A stretch of DNA of 51,790 bases, counting the filler, from Calcarisporiella thermophila CBS 279.70 (Eukaryota > Fungi > Calcarisporiellomycota), in assembly GCF_041956535.1 (NCBI RefSeq). It is 3 parts of 3 records of this genome, joined end to end, with 100 filler letters (N's around TTAATTAATTAA, not from the genome) between each part and the next. Parts side by side here need not be neighbours in the genome. Positions count along the whole stretch, not along the records: positions 41,034 to 51,790 come from NW_027192216.1; 2 more parts are not named here. The stretch is one strand, 5' to 3'. Position numbers and translations under genes: made by a program. Of the stretch, positions 41,034-51,790 are shown piece after piece. A model generated the notes under the pieces. That model did not search any database. It worked only from the letters and a program-made list of their open reading frames with translations, and was not told the DNA's origin. The number at the start of each line of letters is the position of its first letter. The stretch's first letter is position 1.

Positions 41034-41071
41034 GTTGCTTGATCAAAAAAAAAAACTAGAGGTCACTCACC

Positions 41072-41383
41072 GGCCGTCCCTGGATGGCACAGTGGTTAAG
41101 AGTCCCGGGGCTTAACCAATGTGTGCTGGGTTCGACTCCCGGCGATGGCACCTGTACTAGAGATGGGTCCGGGACATACTCTAGGAATCGAGCTATAAGA
41201 TACTCCGTTCTTAATAATTTGATATTGATCGTCCTCAGAAAACAAGAAATACGTTTAATATAGGGCCTGTCAGAAGAAATACATGTAAGCAATGGTTGAG
41301 CGTTAGAAATAGCGTGCAAATCCTTTCATTTAACTTGTATAGGGGACTTTTCAATAAAAGATCCTTCAATCTCAAAAAAAAAA
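41072..41383 (+). mobile_element. tRNA-derived SINE, family 1
   Basis: A box TGGCACAGTGG, B box GGTTCGACTCC, acceptor-like stem GCCGTC/GATGGC. 3' tail GACTTTTCAATAAAAGATCC followed by A10. Confidence 0.8.
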
Positions 41384-41632
41384 TCAGAAAGCGCGATATC
41401 TTTCAAGTAGAGCAGCCAATAGAATTGATTGTCGCTACGTTGCCGACCCCTCGTGGTTACTCGCCGGCCTCGTGGTTACTCTTATGCTCCCTCATGGCTA
41501 TCTTGTTGATGTTGATTGATACTTTGTTGTCTTATCTATCTCATCTTTGAACCCCAGTGAGAGTTGTTCTCCTTTGTTCACAATTCTATTTAAACCCTTC
41601 GGTTTATTTTAATGTTCAACACCAATTCCCTG

Positions 41633-41792
41633 AATTATTAAGATAAATCTCTTATTTTTATCAAGATCCGGATATCCCTCCACACAAACCTCTTTTCGCC
41701 TGTAACAGATTGAATCAGATGTTCTTGTAATTTATTTAGAAGGAAAATTTACCACTACAATCCCTCGATCGAGAGGTCACTCACTCACTCAC
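41633..41792 (+). other. Anchor/target sequence, copy 1: hairpin, motif and (TCAC)4
   Basis: Aligns by eye with the reverse complement of 51288-51443. Ends CCTC-GATCGA-GAGG-TCACTCACTCACTCAC. Confidence 0.75.
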
Positions 41793-42129
41793 GGAGGAGG
41801 GTTAGTGTAGTGGACTATCCCTGGTATGCCGATGAGAATGGCGTGGGTTTGAATCCCACTTCCTCCACCAGCACTTACTCTTAGTTTGTGACTGCTGTCC
41901 ACTTGATCAGTAATTGAGTCTTTATTATTGAAAAGATCGCTCCTACGATAAGTACAAAGATTACATCGGTTTCACGTACATGCTATTCACGACAACTACG
42001 ATATGCGCATATCGATTGAACGCCTATCTATCACGGACCTATATCTCGCTATATTAAGTCCATTGACATTAACTTCATGTAATATATGAAAATTAAATAA
42101 AAAGTTTCCATTGATTGACCAAAAAAAAA
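41793..42129 (+). mobile_element. tRNA-derived SINE, family 2
   Basis: GGAGGA...TCCTCC-ACCA acceptor stem with CCA, A box TAGTGTAGTGG, T-arm GTGGG-TTTGAAT-CCCAC. Ends ATTAACTTCATG..AATAAA..A9. Confidence 0.8.
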
Positions 42130-42146
42130 TTCGAGAGGTCACTCAC

Positions 42147-42434
42147 TTGGATACAAATCCAAGGAGACAAAATATCCTTCAACCAAAACATTTAGCTCCA
42201 ATACGATATTGCCGAATGCCCTATCATCCGTATTCCAAGTTTCCCTTTTACTTTTCTTTTCCTTTTTTATCTCCTTTCCTCTCTCGTATACCACCTTCCT
42301 TGAAAAATAGGAAGGTATCCACACTATCTACCATGTCTTACATGTATTGCTTATTATCTAATATCTTGATATCTATCAAAATCCTTTACTAACAAAAAAG
42401 AGTAGTTTTAAATAAAGATCCTTCAAAAAAAAAA
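42147..42434 (+). mobile_element. 5'-truncated retroposed insert, probably a LINE 3'UTR
   Basis: Bounded by motif copies, with a pyrimidine tract. Ends AATAAAGATCCTTC-A10 like the SINE tails. Confidence 0.6.
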
Positions 42435-42519
42435 TCGAGAGGTCACTCACCAGGTTTAACAGAGTAGGATACTTTTCAATAAAAGTTTTATTTGTTGAAA
42501 AAGGTCTTTCTTTTATTTT

Positions 42520-42971
42520 GGGGGTGGAGTAGCTTAGTGGTAAGCGCTCCCAGGTGCCATCGAGATGGCACGGGTTCGAACCCCCATCAGCACAAAAAAT
42601 GTGAATGGACACTCCACTAATTCTGTGTCTTGCTTGTCGTGTCTATGCTCTCCATTAGTATTACTTCTGTCTTTCCAGTCCGGTTTTCTACAGTCACTCT
42701 CTTCGTCCCGTCGCGCCTGGCTCCTCCACAAGTATCGCCTCTGTCTTGTCGTGTCTGGTCTTCCCATTATTACTGTCTCTCGTTACTGTTCCTTGCTTGC
42801 CGTACCTGTCGTGTCGAGTTATTCTACTATTACTGTTCCTTAATTGGTCTATACCTTCTGCCAGCAATTTGGCTATGATCTGCACAAAGGCGTACGACCC
42901 TTGATTCACCTTCAACGATTAACTTCATGAGGATACTTTTCAATAAAGATCCGTAGCTTCAAAAAAAAAAA
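42520..42971 (+). mobile_element. tRNA-derived SINE, family 3, whose body matches the LINE 3'UTR at 49985-49586
   Basis: A box TAGCTTAGTGG, B box GGTTCGAACCC. Body 42611-42960 aligns with the reverse complement of 49595-49980. Ends in A11. Confidence 0.85.
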
Positions 42972-42985
42972 GAGGTCATTCACCA

Positions 42986-43101
42986 GGGGGAGGAGTAGCT
43001 TTGGCTATAATCTGTACAAAGGCGTATGACTTTTGATCCATCTTCACCGATTAACTTCATGAGGTCACTTTCCAATAAAGATCCGTAAAATAATTAAAAA
43101 A
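42986..43101 (+). mobile_element. Internally deleted mini-SINE of family 3
   Basis: GGGGGAGGAGTAGCTT head fused directly to the TGGCTATAATCTGTACAAAGGCG..AATAAAGATCCGTA tail. Confidence 0.75.
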
Positions 43102-43268
43102 GAGATCACTCACTACCCATCCAAGCACGGGACTCTTTAAACTTTAACCTTTGCGTTCTTGTACCTAATCATCTTGTTCAGTAGACTCCCTCACAAGCAA
43201 TATAGTTTAAATAAACCACAAGGCACAAGTTCTCGCCTCCATAGAGGAAAAAAAAAGGTCATTCACCA

Positions 43269-44083: not shown

Positions 44084-45367
44084 TTATAAAAAATTCAATA
44101 TAATCAACCAGATCCAAGTAATGGTTTTAATGAGGATATTGCTTGTATTTGATCTATAACTGATATTAATCGGTTTTGGAGCCGGAGTCCTTGGTTGATA
44201 TCCACCTGCTAAGGCTCCATTTGCTATAGTTAAGTACTTGCAATATTCTCTGCCATTTTCCAGTAAACTCTTCCCAGTTTCATGGTCTACCCCGACAGAC
44301 CTCTGCCCACTCCAAATCATTTCAGCTGCTTTATTCACGTCATACCGCATTCCAGGGGTGACTAAGTCACATGCTTCGTTGCAAGGGGCATACGAGATCG
44401 CACCACTTTCAATACCAAACAGGGTTGTCATTCCAAGCTTAAGGCGATTTGCGAGATATAGATCAATTATTGCTTGAACGAGCACAGTGTAATTGCGCAC
44501 AATGGAGGTGAGTACCTGCTGACTGTTAGGGAGAGCCCCAACCGCCCAATCTGAACACCACTGATCTGTGCCATGACCAATAACAGGTTTGCCCGCGACT
44601 GCAAAAGCCTTAAGAGCTGCTGTTCCCATAGCACCTCCACCAGCGTTCCATAGCACATCTGCACCATGTTTCAGAAATATCTGGGCATAGTACTCTCCCA
44701 AAACGTTCTTTACCAGGCTCTCAGCATAAATACAGAGTACCCCACACTCACTGCACACAGATTTCACTCCGTTGGCAAAACCATTAACCAGTCTAGTGTA
44801 AGACAAACTTGTGGAGTTTGACCCACTAATAACTGCAGGGAGCCTGTTGAGATCTCTTGCAAATAAACCCGCCACAATTCCAGCAAGAAAGCCTTCATGT
44901 TCTTCGAGAAATACTGCAGAGGCTACATTCGGGGCTGAAGAAGGATATTCATAATCAAGGATTACGAATGTCGAGTTATTAACAATATTTTGACCAACAG
45001 AATTCCATGCATCAGCAGCTTGTTGGCCAAGTGCGATGATTAAATCTGATTGTGAGGCTTTTATAAGTGCATGGCTGTACTCTTCAAGCTTTTGAGTTGG
45101 GGGTACTATAGCGGGTTGAGCCTCACACATTCCTATAAAATCATTGTAAGTTTGTCATTTCATTCGACTAATATATGGGTCTAAAGAGAATATTTTACCT
45201 TGCGACCGCGAACACGCGGCTGCAGCTCCAGCCTGTATAAGATAAGCAACATTGCATTTAATGGAGAAATCGGATTGCGGAGGCAAAACGATCTGGACCG
45301 ATACAAGACGCGCAGCTGCAAATGATCCAAGCAAAAGAAAATATAAACATATATAAATTGAGATCAT
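44084..45367 (-). CDS. BMP/PnrA-family (bacterial basic membrane protein) solute-binding-like protein, secreted and possibly GPI-anchored, 2 exons
   Basis: NVASAVFLEEHEGFLAGIVAG, RLVNGFANGVKSV, GADVLWNAGG, VIGHGTDQ, VLTSIVRN. N-terminal signal peptide, intron 45198-45133 in frame, hydrophobic C-terminus. Confidence 0.8.
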
Positions 45368-46457: not shown

Positions 46458-46619
46458 TGGGGGTGTTCACGCTTCCAGCTTATTCGGATTATTTTGCTTA
46501 AAAATAAGCAAAATTCTGCATTTTAACTGGCTACTAAAAATCATTAGCCAATCACAATGCGCTATTTCGCTTATTTATGATCAAAATAAACCGAATAATC
46601 AGAAGCGTGAACACCCCCA
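46458..46619. mobile_element. MITE-like element, ~160 bp
   Basis: Perfect 18 bp terminal inverted repeat TGGGGGTGTTCACGCTTC / GAAGCGTGAACACCCCCA, extending imperfectly to ~50 bp. No clear TSD. Confidence 0.7.
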
Positions 46620-46626
46620 ATAACTA

Positions 46627-48227
46627 CAAGTAAGGAAAAATGTGTCAGTGTATTTTATCAATTTTTCTTTGAATGCTCTTATCTCCTGAATGGATGGAAT
46701 ATTATACAAGCGGTTTTATTATTAAACACAGGTGGATCTACACTATGTGCTGTTCCAACCGCTAGCCCGCTAGTTATAAATGCATTTCTGATAAAACTAG
46801 GATAGCATTGAATAGCACCCCGAGTTTATGGGAAATTGATATCTTTATAAATATCGATGTGTGCCAAAGAGACCCAAATACTTTTATATTCTCTCCACCA
46901 TTCCATCTAAATATTTTTATTTGCAATGGTGGTGTTTTTATTTTTTTAACACTATCTTACATCTATGAAGCCAACTCGTAAAAAGATTCGAGATCGTGTG
47001 CTTGAACTTTCAAGAAAGGGAGAGTCCACACATAAGATTGGTGCACGAGTGAGAATAAGCCGTGAAACTACTAGAAAAATCATCAAGCAATGGAGCACCC
47101 CGAAATATCCTCTTATGAAGCCAAAATATGGTCGTCCACGTAGTCTAAGCGAATCAGATGAGAAATACATCGCTAAGAAGGCGTCAACTGAAGAGGGTTC
47201 TAAGCTTGCCGACTTGCAGCAAGTTATCAAAGAACTTAATAAGAGCGTAACAAACAAAACTGTAAAAATGATGCTCAGACGTCACGAAGTAGAGCCTCGA
47301 TCAAAGCCTAAAAAGCCTTTGCTGCTCCCACGCCATTTTAAAGTTTGATTCAAATTCGTAGCTCAACTCGCTAGATAGGATTTTTAGACCATTCAAACCA
47401 TAATATTATCGGATGAAACCATTATACTCTTTTTACAGACCACGGCAAAGGAATACACATACGTAAAGAGGGGGCAGCTTTTGCGTGAGTGCAATATTAT
47501 TCCAACCACGAAACAGGGAAAAGAGGCAATCATGGTATGATGCTGCATTACCTCGTAAGTGTGGGGCTTCTACTTCGCGTGGAAGGCGGAGTAAATGCTA
47601 GGATGTATCAGACCATTTTAGATGAGGGTTTTATTGGAATACTCGAACGGTACGGGATGGACAAGGACAAGGTCGTATTCCAACATGATAGCGCCCTCAT
47701 AACGCCAAGTCAACTCAAGCATGGCTGCGAGATCGCAATGTAAAGGACTTAGAATGGCCTGCTCAGTCACTGGATTTGAATCCCATAGAGAATGCGTGGG
47801 GCATCTTGAAGAGATGGCTTCAAGATTATTCTACTCGGCCAAAGGAAAAGCCCTGGGAACGAATCAAATACACGTGGGAGAATATAGAAAAGACCTATAT
47901 TGATAAACTATATGAGAGTATGTTGAGGAGATTCCGAGCTGTTTATAAAGCTAGAGGAGGATATACGAAGTATTGAAATATTATTGTGAAATAACGATAA
48001 ACATGTTTTCAATTTTATCATGAAAGCCCTTTTTCCTGAACATCTATATTAATACCCATGGTTTTTTAGAAAATGCATTTATAACCAGGATAGCGGTTGG
48101 AACAGCACATAGTGTAGATCCACCAGTTTTAATAATAAAGCCGCTTGTATAATATTCCATCCATTCAGGAGGTAAGAGCATTCAAAGGAAAATTGTTAAA
48201 ACACGCTGTCACATTTTTCCCTACTTG
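46627..48227 (+). mobile_element. Tc1/mariner transposon with ~170 bp TIRs and a pseudogenised transposase (46965-47976)
   Basis: TA|CAAGT...ACTTG|TA ends. [30 protein letters not shown]. Several stops and frameshifts. Confidence 0.93.
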
Positions 48228-48979
48228 TAGATCGACTGATTTAGTTATTCTTTGTATCCACGAAATCGCAAGCTATCTTTTGACTACCATCGAATTGAAT
48301 CAGTAAGCCTCCTACCAATTTCTGCTTAAGTCTTCATTTTTTTTCTCCGTGCATGTACCCACTGCTCTTTAATTGCAATAAATAGCCCTATAAGAAGTGA
48401 TATAAGGATAATTTATGGATATCACGAGGTATACTGCATTTTTCTTAATCTTTATTTTTTTTTATAATTTTTAATAATCTCCTATTAGCTATTTTCGGAA
48501 AATACAAGGAAATTTTAAGGAACCTGCAGCATTCCCCATAGTTTCCATATTTTTTTTCCTGTGATCAATTCTTATATGGTAGTCCAGATAGAGAGATACA
48601 TTTGAGTACATCTGACATTGTCTACCAATAGCGTGGCATCATCCTCTTCTCGGTCATCTATGACGATTACAATATTTATCTTGTATATGGTTCAGACAAT
48701 GGTATCGTATAGGAGCATGGAGATTTACCGGTCATTTGCTTGTACTTCCCCGTGGTATCCGAAGAGCTGTTTGAATCTCTGAGTGTGTGTCTAAGGCTTA
48801 TATGGGATCCCTTGACGTCTTCTATTGAATACCTCCCAAAGGTCAACAATTTTCGCGTATTTTCAAAGAAGGAATATTCTATGACCAATACCTTTTCACG
48901 CCGGCATCTCTTGCTATTAAGGCTGCTACTAGATTTGTTGTTATTTGGGAAAATAACAAGTCCATTCCGTTTTAACATT

Positions 48980-49572
48980 AGTCCTATATTGAAAAGTGTC
49001 CTATCTTGTTTAAAATGGATGAGTAGCTTTCATGTCATATTCCCCAAGGAAATGCTCCTGGTCTACCTTGGATGAAGAAGTATAAAAAAAAAGAAGGAAA
49101 GCGAGAAAAACAAAAAAACAAACAAAAACTAAAAAAAGTAAATATATAAGGAGTAAGACAGGTCAAGCGAAGCTGCTTTGTATCATAGAATGAATCAAAG
49201 TATTGCATAAAAAATATGATATTTGTGAACATGAAATAAAGGAATAGGATAAAATATAAAAAGAATAAGAAAAGAAAGTAAGAAGAGAAGAAGAGCAAAA
49301 AGAAAAGGAATTGGCTATAGTATGCAGCAGAGAGAGGTTGGAAGAGGTTCTCACAGCGGAGTTGCTTGATGTTAAGGCTGCTGTTTGCTACATAAAGGTA
49401 TCCTGGATAAATATCACAGTTTCATCTATAACAATCAACCAACTTCTTCTTGGGCTTTTGTCGATAAAGTCTTCCTCCTGATCCTGTTTTATTGCCGCCA
49501 ATCACTTGAAGCTTATCCTCGCCGTAGTTTGTAGTCATATTGCATTGTTATGGATATCGGGATAGGATGGTT
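48980..49572 (-). mobile_element. 5'-truncated LINE, lineage B (ORF2 C-terminus and 3'UTR)
   Basis: PISITMQYDYKLRRG..AAIKQDQEEDFIDK..RSWLIVIDETVIFIQDT is homologous to PVAITKQFDHELQRG..KKDFIDKWSRGNWVNIIDDSVFFTQDT of lineage A. Its tail matches 51052-51140. Confidence 0.75.
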
Positions 49573-49585
49573 GGTGAATGACCTG

Positions 49586-50570
49586 TTTTTTTTTGAAGCT
49601 ACAGAACTTAATTGAAAAATATCCTCATGAAGTTAATTGTTGGTGAATCAAAGGTCATATGCCTTTGTACAGATCATAGCCAATTGCTGGCAGAAGGTAT
49701 AGACCAATTAAGTAACAGTAATAGTAGAGCAAACAGACAAGCAGAGAAAACCAGACACAACAAGTTGAGTAAACCAGACACAAAAGATACGGCAAGCGAG
49801 GGATATTAATGAGAGACAGTAACAATGGAAAGGCCAGGCACGACAAGGCAGAGGAAATACTAGTGGAAGAGCCAGACACGACAGGACGGAGAGGGTGATT
49901 GTAGAGAACCAGACTGGAAAAAGCCGATAATACTAATAAAGAACATAGACACGACAAGCAAGGCACAGAATTAGTGGAGAGTGCGGTTCTCAAGCCGGAG
50001 TTGGGACTGGGGTTTGATCTTCAGAGGTGTCCTGGGTAAAAAACACGGAATCATCTATGATGTTCACCCAGTTTCCCCTTGACCATTTATCGATGAAGTC
50101 TTTTTTCCGATTCAGTTTCGTTGCCATCCACCACTTAGACTTTACTCCTCGCTGTAATTCGTGGTCAAATTGTTTGGTTATGGCTACCGGATTGGATTGG
50201 GCATCATCTAGCACTAATTCAAGTCTCGAGCGGTATATCCACAAGGCTATGTTGTGGCTCAGAGCGACCACTTCGTTGAAGCGTTGGTCTATTTGTTTGT
50301 CTTGTCCAAACAGTCTGTCTTCTCTCGTGGATTCGTGTGGCGATATTCCAGTGATTCTGCAGTTTGTCTTGTCAACTCTTTGCCAGAGTTGTGCGATAGC
50401 TGGGCAGTCTAGAAAGGTATGGGCAATTGTTTCGGGTATTCCTAGGAAATACCTTTTGCAAGTGTTTGAATTTCCAGTCCATTTGCTAGTGATGATTCCG
50501 ATAACTATTTTGTGCTTCATAAGTCTCCAGCGAAGGGTTCTGTGCTTGGGTTCTGACGGATGCTTTTTCT
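49586..50570 (-). mobile_element. 5'-truncated L1/Tx1-type LINE, lineage A (zf-RVT region, 3'UTR, poly(A))
   Basis: EPKHRTLRWRLMKHKIVIG..CKRY..PETIAHTFLDCPAIAQLW..IALWIYRSR, stop at 49990, ~400 bp 3'UTR, A9. Motif on both sides. Confidence 0.85.
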
Positions 50571-50583
50571 GGTGAGTGACCTC

Positions 50584-51020
50584 TTTTTTTTTTAAACACG
50601 CTCAAAATATTTTATGTATCTGAATAACATATACATGAGAAAAGGGTAAAACAGCTAAAATAGGTTGGGAAGGAAAGAGTAAATAATAGAACATGGTAGA
50701 ATAAAAACGTATTTTATCCAAGACAAAGAGCTCGAGAAAAAATAAAATGAGTGAAAAGCTAAAATATCTAATCACAGCATTCAAGACAGCAACAAAGACA
50801 GCTTCCAATAGCACATCCAAGATAAAGGTTTCCGCAGCAGCCGTCATCTTTCTGAGGAGGAGGTTGTTGGACGTATACGACATTGAGAGGGGGATTGGGA
50901 GCATAGGCTTGCTGTGGTGGGGGTGGATATCCATAATAACCCTTGTCTTGCTGGCCGCTCCTGTTATCAACCGGAAGTTTTAATTGCAATTGGGAGAGGG
51001 GAAGACGGGATAAAATAGAA
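50584..51020 (-). pseudogene. Processed retrocopy of a host CYSTM (cysteine-rich tail-anchored membrane module) mRNA
   Basis: Intronless SGQQDKGYYGYPPPPQQAY..VVYVQQPPPQKDDGCC..GCAIGSCLCCCLECCD*. AGG stands where ATG is expected (50962-50960). 3'UTR plus A10, flanked by identical GAGGTCACTCACCAG. Confidence 0.8.
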
Positions 51021-51035
51021 CTGGTGAGTGACCTC

Positions 51036-51287
51036 TTTTTTTTTTACAAAGGACCTTTATTGAAAAGTGTCCTATCCTGTTAAAAAGGTAGAGTAGCTTC
51101 TACGTCAAAATCACCCAGGTAATGCTCCTGGCCTACCTTGCAGAATTTGGAGGATAGAAGGAAAAAGAAAGAAAGGAAGAAAAGGATTTAAGTGTAAGAG
51201 GAAGAGAGAAAAGGTGATGAGGAGAGAGCTAGGAGAGTATGGAAACAGCAATTAGCTTGATAAAGAAGGGGATAGGAATAACTGTAA
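51036..51287 (-). mobile_element. 5'-truncated 3'UTR insert with a lineage-B-type tail
   Basis: Pyrimidine tract, CCAGG-AGCATTA-CCTGG and GTAGA-AGCTAC-TCTAC hairpins, GACACTTTTCAATAAAGGTCC, A10. Confidence 0.7.
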
Positions 51288-51443
51288 GGTGAGTGACCTT
51301 TCGGCCAAGGGATTGTAGTGGCGGATTTTCCTTATAAATAAATTACAAGAACATCCGAATCAATCTGTTACGGGCGGTTGGAGACTTGTGGAGAGATGTA
51401 CGGACTTAAAAGAGAAAAATAAGAGATTGGTTTTAATAATAAT
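51288..51443 (-). other. Anchor/target sequence, copy 2
   Basis: The minus strand reads ..CGCCCGTAACAGATTGATTCGGATGTTCTTGTAATTTATTTATAAGGAAAATCCGCCACTACAATCCCTTGGCCGAAAGGTCACTCACC, homologous to 41697-41784. Confidence 0.75.
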
Positions 51444-51790
51444 ACTAATAGAATAATATAACCAGTGTATCCTCACCTTAAAAGAGAAAAATAAGAGATT
51501 GGTGAGGAACAACAAGTCAAAATGGATGGATTTAAATAAAGATAGGAAATCAGAAAAATGACTCAAAATAGATGTTCCCAAGGATAAACTAAAAATGCAT
51601 CTTTTCAAAACAAACGATCACAAGAAAACAACAAAAGATCAATAACATAGCACTATATAATCTTATCCCTCGTCATGTGATGTCGTCGGGTGAACCGGAC
51701 TACATTAAAGACCGCCACCTCACTCCCCGAATCCCAGAGTGACTGCTTACGTGACTTCTCTGTACCAAAGACCAATATCCTCGTAACAAA

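Follow-up and report, generated by a model that had tools for sequence, protein, structure and literature searches.

Processed pseudogenes are known as near-random by-products of L1 activity, and the usual view of LINEs that insert at fixed targets is that they chiefly copy RNA of their own. Among the known systems closest to the one considered here are the TRE5 elements of Dictyostelium, which belong to the L1 clade and combine APE, RT and zinc finger; with the help of TFIIIB they insert 44-54 bp upstream of tRNA genes, oriented opposite to them (PMC5911963, PMC5006619). The same neighborhood is used by LTR elements, since DGLT-A and Ty3 integrate about 15 bp upstream of tRNA genes (PMC5911963, PMC5006619). 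In two reviews, tRNA-targeted non-LTR elements are listed only from Dictyostelia (PMC5911963, PMC5006619), and a limited literature search returned no report of tRNA-targeted LINEs in Mucoromycota.

The locus described here comes from a mucoromycote fungus, Calcarisporiella thermophila (GCA_041956535.1). The whole stretch of DNA that was analysed, called the window from here on, is 51,790 nucleotides long, filler included, and the piece of interest within it lies on MU987589.1 (locus L003), with runs of N bounding both sides. It holds a CYSTM-like segment between two copies of a 15-mer, amid stacks of retroposons. In the reading that we consider probable as a whole, the segment is a processed retrocopy of a host CYSTM-family mRNA that has no start codon and is by now a pseudogene, the 15-mer is positions 54-68 of a solo LTR, W, and LINEs, SINEs and mRNAs have been delivered to a narrow zone of the LTR beside a tRNA gene.

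The CYSTM-like segment reads on the minus strand of the window. Directly after the poly(A) of a neighboring element (51046-51036) stands the upstream copy of the 15-nt target-site duplication, GAGGTCACTCACCAG (51021-51035), followed by an insert of 427 nt (51020-50594), an A10 tail (50584-50593) and, directly after the tail, the downstream copy of GAGGTCACTCACCAG (50569-50583). The two copies agree at 15 of 15 positions; with up to two mismatches allowed, GAGGTCACTCACCAG is matched six times in the piece, against 0.03 expected. Within the insert, a 58-nt 5' leader (50963-51020) precedes an intronless coding region (50768-50962), in which AGG (50962-50960) stands for ATG, 63 further codons come next and TAG (50770-50768) closes the frame; the frame is open from 51019 to this stop. 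A 174-nt 3' trailer (50594-50767) carries CATAAA at 50616-50611, 17 nt upstream of the A-run, and lacks the ACTTTTCAATAAAG tail that neighboring inserts carry. No gene model is annotated at the insert. A preliminary description had seen here a putative 5'UTR, an intronless CYSTM-like ORF with AGG in place of ATG, a 3'UTR and A10, identical 15-nt repeats on both sides and no TE tail, and the coordinates as read bear it out on all of these points.

The identity of the coding region comes from its relatives. A HMMER search of the window ORF against 1.8 billion representatives matched only two proteins, P0001 (70 aa, 67% identity, E 1e-6) and P0002 (118 aa, 57% identity, E 1e-5). Against Pfam CYSTM (PF12734) these two score 17-20 bits, below the cut-off of 25.2, and the window ORF itself had no match in Pfam, the CYSTM profile included; the label "CYSTM-like" rests on its matches to P0001 and P0002, themselves sub-threshold for that profile. 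A Pro/Gln/Tyr-rich N-terminal part and a Cys-rich C-terminal tail align across all three sequences, and the Met of the relatives (MSDKGYY / MSDQKG) aligns with the AGG. P0002 is encoded in the same genome (locus L002) with two introns in its coding region and P0001, from another fungal assembly, with one, as against none in the window copy. P0002 was ruled out as the parent of the insert, to which it has no DNA similarity.

A parent with ATG, introns and matching UTRs was not found by word search, which was blank, by HMMER, or by a metagenome scan, which gave relatives at 53-57% identity only; a look-up of sequencing runs gave none for the insert. Since these searches, which reached part of the assembly, returned no parent, the "processed" status of the segment rests on its anatomy and on the introns of its relatives. 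The exact 15-nt duplication, the A10 tail, the lack of introns against one or two in the two relatives, and the lack of a TE tail together support the view that the segment is built like a processed retrocopy, for which LINE machinery would have copied a cellular poly(A) RNA in trans.

The insert is one layer of a larger structure, formed by two inverted retroposon stacks at 41720-43267 (plus strand) and 51353-48970 (minus strand). In the right stack, all on the minus strand, the insert nearer the LTR is a LINE-A copy, 5'-truncated to its 3' UTR, with A11 (51036-51287), which is 98% identical to L004 11100-11351. On the other side of the CYSTM unit, the next insert outward is an L1-like LINE-B, also 5'-truncated, with A9 (49586-50568); it keeps an ORF tail with zf-RVT and has its 3' UTR in common with SINE3. 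Beyond it lie a degenerate older copy of the motif, cAGGTCATTCACCA (49572-49585), and a diverged LINE fragment ending ACTTTTCAATATAGG... (48970-49571), the oldest visible insert of this stack. The LTR-like repeat W (51289-51353, minus strand) starts with TGTTCTTG at 51353, meets the stack at W position 55 and contains a native copy of the motif core, GGTCACTCAC (51298-51289). A 12-nt spacer separates W from the LTR X2 (51366-51788, minus strand), which reads TGTTACGAG...GTAACA and starts 2 nt from an assembly gap.

The left arm is the inverted counterpart (41720-43267, plus strand), with W (41720-41772) and then at least six inserts with poly(A), the motif core coming after each; cores stand at 42137, 42441, 42974, 43104 and 43257. 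Here the LTR X1 is present from its position 57 to its end, GTAACA (41384-41707, plus strand), and the poly(A) of a SINE1 abuts it at TCAGAAAGCGCG. This is a second recurrent insertion site, X1 having been struck by SINE1 at its own position 56-57 (41384). On both arms the X LTR ends in GTAACA (41707; 51366) and the W start TGTTCTTG follows 12 nt later, and the motif starts at W position 54 on the left arm and 56 on the right. Some 30-40 nt ahead of the nick, W also carries the TATA-like TATTTATAAGG. The units between cores comprise three SINE types with tRNA-like heads, a LINE-A 3' UTR scrap, the ORF-cut LINE-B, two other retroposon families and the CYSTM unit.

The SINE1 copy at window 41059-41400 has the motif on its 5' side only and the X1 site TCAGAAAGCGCG on its 3' side. 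At another locus (L006 1232-1269), an inverted CACTCACCAG is joined to the T1-tail fragment of window 42444-42481, with 100% identity over 38 nt. Both cases suggest either stack pieces that were transcribed together (5' transduction or twin priming) or recombination.

The piece has other contents as well. A Tc1/mariner element (46624-48230) has terminal inverted repeats of about 100 nt, 92% complementary, and a decayed transposase with HTH_Tnp_Tc3_2 and DDE_3 fragments. Adjoining its terminal repeat is a long hairpin (46463-46614, plus strand) with a sub-threshold match to Rfam MIR8562 (41.6 bits against a cut-off of 211), probably a repeat-derived foldback. An ORF of 348 aa at 44084-45130 (minus strand), annotated as a 347-aa gene, has a Bmp/PnrA-like ABC substrate-binding domain; this family is mostly prokaryotic, and the ORF may be an old gene transfer.

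The motif could be something that an enzyme recognizes or simply the DNA that was duplicated at each landing. Its core, GGTCAYTCAC, occurs 11 times in 10.7 kb, nine times directly after a poly(A) and twice after a shared native flank without poly(A). The units that end in these poly(A) tracts are all oriented alike with respect to the motif, and the bottom-strand nick varies by no more than 4 nt. That the motif is target DNA and not part of the RNA follows from three observations: it precedes a truncated LINE ORF, three SINE types, LINE 3' UTR scraps and an mRNA alike; two of the duplications include four extra native upstream bases (TCGA); and the flanks are different elsewhere, elemF in L005 lying between copies of TTCAGGAAGCGCGATATC and SINE1 in L009 being preceded by TTCAGGAAGCGCC. 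Rfam gave no match at or near the motif, and a literature search with its letters returned primers only.

Other loci were reached through the LINE ORF tail (zf-RVT) beside the CYSTM insert, which matched eight C. thermophila fragments. Nine further loci of the same genome were sampled in this way, about 170 kb in all, and this is a biased sample, chosen through LINE ORFs. The motif core was seen only at the window locus among the 170 kb, being absent from about 150 kb at eight other LINE loci (L004-L010, L014). There the same LINE and SINE families have unrelated duplications (L004, L005, L006, L009, L014): LINE-A in L004 has TTAGCTTTTGTGACTCT, and other duplications at the sampled loci read CGTTACAACAC, GAATTTTTCCT, GATACTCGGGACAC, GGACTTAGGTCCC and AAAACTTCATTTAC, with no common consensus. 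The families do not keep to one defined target each, as sequence-specific non-LTR elements of the Tx1, R1 or R2 type do.

Two other origins of the stacks were considered and rejected. Insertion into pre-existing A-tracts does not fit, as both motif copies are complete and the nick lies at the boundary of A-run and motif; moreover, in each stack the site that took the first insert had no A-run. The idea that the target is an inverted-repeat DNA transposon (MITE) was displaced by the LTR reading, given the TG...CA ends, the 4-nt duplications and the order of LTR, PBS and gag.

What the sampled sites have in common is their position. Each of the sampled LINE loci contains tRNA genes, 12 in 128 kb, and the order outward from the tRNA 5' end is a spacer of 9-16 nt, an LTR, and a poly(A) insert at LTR position 51-58. 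The LTR on the tRNA side starts with TGTTACGAG, TGTTGTGAGG, TGTTAAGG or TGTCATAA and ends ...GTAACA or ...GCAACA. Measured from the mature tRNA 5' end, the distance is 60-72 nt for nicks and about 72-85 nt for element 5' ends (L004-L007, L009, L014), and in all junctions read the element 5' end faces the tRNA 5' end, head-to-head. The insertions at loci with a visible tRNA gene thus have the narrow target interval and the fixed orientation of the TRE5-like class. The junction positions 51-58 span six LTR families whose sequences differ at the nick, and this LTR position varies less than the distance to the tRNA gene (60-72).

These repeats have the features of LTRs: TG...CA ends, 4-nt duplications (AATC in L007, TAAT in L004) and, in L005, an LTR end followed by 6 nt, a PBS complementary to a tRNA 3' end, and gag/protease. 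The L005 copy (3300-3130, minus strand) is a partial LTR retrotransposon with the 5' LTR end ...ACATAACA, and solo LTRs of its family flank tRNA genes. Across L004-L010 and L014 the tRNA genes are those for His, Arg, Leu, Lys, Phe, Asp, Met, Gly and Ser, each with an LTR 9-16 nt upstream. At the same loci, assembly gaps typically start within about 100 nt upstream of the tRNA genes, so that the assembly breaks at tRNA-linked TE stacks.

The positional prediction was put to the test at a new locus, L014, which has three tRNA-Ser genes. What begins 80-85 nt upstream of them, head-to-head, is respectively a SINE2, an assembly gap and a LINE-A fragment, and the nicks are at about -71 and -66. In L004 and L010 the layers run from the tRNA gene to a young LTR, a short spacer, and an older LTR with its stack, and all clear cases of insertion are in the LTR directly abutting a tRNA gene or in an LTR displaced by a younger one. 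Neither the window nor L003 shows a tRNA gene, and both stacks end at runs of N; we infer for this locus two tRNA genes hidden in the assembly gaps on either side.

Pfam zf-RVT is found in all LINE ORF tails, which are L1-like, and it is the only LINE domain read, the upstream parts of long copies falling in N runs (the 4.5-kb LINE insert of L007 is mostly N). In the search for a full-length LINE, protein searches gave C-terminal fragments only and the Atlas gave zf-RVT clusters only.

A second host retrocopy, at L010 9262-9707 (MU987567.1), is an intronless gene of 92 aa for acyl-CoA-binding protein (ACBP), annotated as VTP21DRAFT_8735. It has an intact ATG and ORF, AATAAA and A12, and its 17-nt duplication reads TCGGGAGG(A/G)TAGCACGC; it sits at position 57 of an X-like LTR, with a truncated LINE coming next. 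The protein is the sole member of its 90% cluster, and the copy may be a functional retrogene. In the first nine loci (about 155 kb), roughly 14 inserts can be delimited by the two copies of their duplication, and two of these are host genes. Three unrelated TE 3' tails and two mRNAs share these sites, which argues for machinery that is relaxed in its choice of templates and selects them by poly(A). Such selection by poly(A) is reported for relaxed L1s (PMC3472496).

The simplest course of events that would account for the locus is this. W would once have adjoined a tRNA gene, and copies of LINEs, SINEs and bystander mRNAs would have accumulated 51-58 nt into this tRNA-adjacent LTR, where the tRNA gene is 60-72 nt away from the nick and about 72-85 nt away from the 5' end of the element, which faces it. 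Repeated insertion at this place would build head-to-tail stacks with the same duplicated bases after every unit. A later insertion of X beside the tRNA gene would then have displaced W and the older stack outward. By analogy with TRE5-A, the machinery may be tethered to the pol III complex. Whether all this amounts to a fungal L1-like LINE system near pol III tRNA genes, one that evolved independently of that in Dictyostelium, accepts any polyadenylated RNA and writes SINEs as well as CYSTM and ACBP mRNAs into a safe haven a few bp wide, seems to us evenly balanced.

The other ways of explaining the locus differ in what they take the cue for insertion to be. One could suppose that the position is set by the LTR itself, for example by a feature some 55 nt from its end such as a promoter or start region, with the CYSTM copy still a trans product of the LINE. 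The junctions are indeed tighter when measured in the LTR, across six families, than from the tRNA gene, and W has the TATA-like TATTTATAAGG ahead of the nick. A cue in the tRNA gene requires an X LTR younger than the CYSTM insert; the LTR cue needs no assumption on their relative ages. However, the sequence at the nick changes from one LTR family to another, the clear cases all lie in an LTR that abuts a tRNA gene or was displaced by a younger one, and TRE5-A is a worked precedent for pol III tethering (PMC5911963); we regard the LTR cue as unlikely. Somewhat less likely again is a LINE endonuclease and RT specific for GAGGTCACTCACCAG, in the manner of Tx1, R1 or R2, that occasionally copies cellular poly(A) RNA. 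The density of cores in the piece, their place after poly(A), their single orientation and the near-constant nick speak for such an enzyme, and tandem inserts that sandwich a duplication within another transposon have a precedent (PMC4494074). Yet the core is missing from the other eight LINE loci, and LINE-A, SINE1, SINE2 and elemF have clean duplications of unrelated sequence, at sites without consensus that are alike only in LTR position. The preliminary description had joined a site-specific RT to the copying of cellular RNA in trans. An RT specific for the 15-mer is not supported by the comparison with the other loci; the trans copying is supported by the retrocopy anatomy and the second example in ACBP, with position in tRNA-adjacent LTRs taking the place of the 15-mer.

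Two further explanations do without a target-site duplication or without a retrocopy. The 15-mer might have been carried by the RNAs, as a spliced leader or as a 5' transduced piece of an upstream element, in which case the flanks would not be a duplication. The motif has CAG at its end and complementarity to a GGTGAGT-like donor; the inverted CACTCACCAG with its T1-tail fragment in L006 indicates that the motif can occasionally travel with a transcript; and the SINE1 at 41059-41384 has it on the 5' side only. Set against this, the motif stands directly before pol III-type SINE heads and before a LINE whose truncation lies within the ORF, at other loci the same families are without it, and after the W LTR there are native copies with no poly(A) ahead of them. 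To our knowledge, moreover, spliced-leader trans-splicing has not been described in fungi, and we consider an RNA-borne 15-mer very improbable. The CYSTM segment might also be a native gene, or part of one, that merely lies between two retroposon insertions. It keeps an intact frame of 63 codons, and the searches described above gave no second CYSTM locus whose UTRs match, but it has no ATG, its A10 falls exactly at the 3' end and abuts a perfect repeat of the 15 nt on its 5' side, every other unit of the stack is a retroposon in the same orientation, and the annotation has no gene model there. A native gene is, to our mind, scarcely credible. Delivery of a processed copy to the tRNA-adjacent LTR stays the reading that we prefer.

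The presence of two host mRNAs at the LINE and SINE position shows that delivery by a position-targeted LINE system can extend to poly(A) RNAs unrelated to it. If the link to tRNA genes is confirmed genome-wide, this would be a fungal counterpart of Dictyostelium TRE5, and so a case of convergent safe-haven targeting, as well as a natural template for RNA-templated insertion at predictable sites. The stacks linked to tRNA genes also explain why the present assembly breaks at these genes. The locus carries a caution too, since short motifs that recur between retroposons can be duplications of the landing spot and not recognition sites.

With the processed pseudogenes and retrogenes made by L1 in mammals and plants the locus shares a bystander poly(A) mRNA copied in trans, without introns, with an A-tail and a duplication of 13-17 nt. 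L1 retrocopies, however, land almost anywhere, at TT/AAAA-like nicks, whereas here two of two lie at the LINE's own relative position. The insertion of Tx1L in Tx1D and of SINEU-3 in Mariner-N4_AMi is similar in that one point of a transposon is hit repeatedly and a 16-bp duplication is sandwiched between the copies (PMC4494074); those Tx1-group cases are specific for one target sequence, and the insertions described here strike several unrelated targets that have only their position in common. The LTRs that flank the stacks resemble those of Ty3 / DGLT-A type elements in that they start 9-16 nt from mature tRNA 5' ends, with TG...CA ends, 4-nt duplications and a tRNA-complementary PBS, although in the present case LTR elements are the substrate and the neighbors of the event and not its agent. 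TRE5-A differs in that its interval is 44-54 bp, so that the one found here, about 60-72 nt for the nick and 72-85 nt for the 5' end, is some 20 bp further out; the host here belongs to the mucoromycote fungi, the cargo extends to SINEs and host mRNAs, and the part of the LINE protein read is zf-RVT only. The likeness to TRE5-A lies in integration that is specific in position and orientation, tens of bp upstream of tRNA genes and opposite to them in transcription, by poly(A) elements that carry a zinc finger, which in TRE5 comes after the RT, at tRNA genes that LTR elements of the Ty3/DGLT-A type use too.
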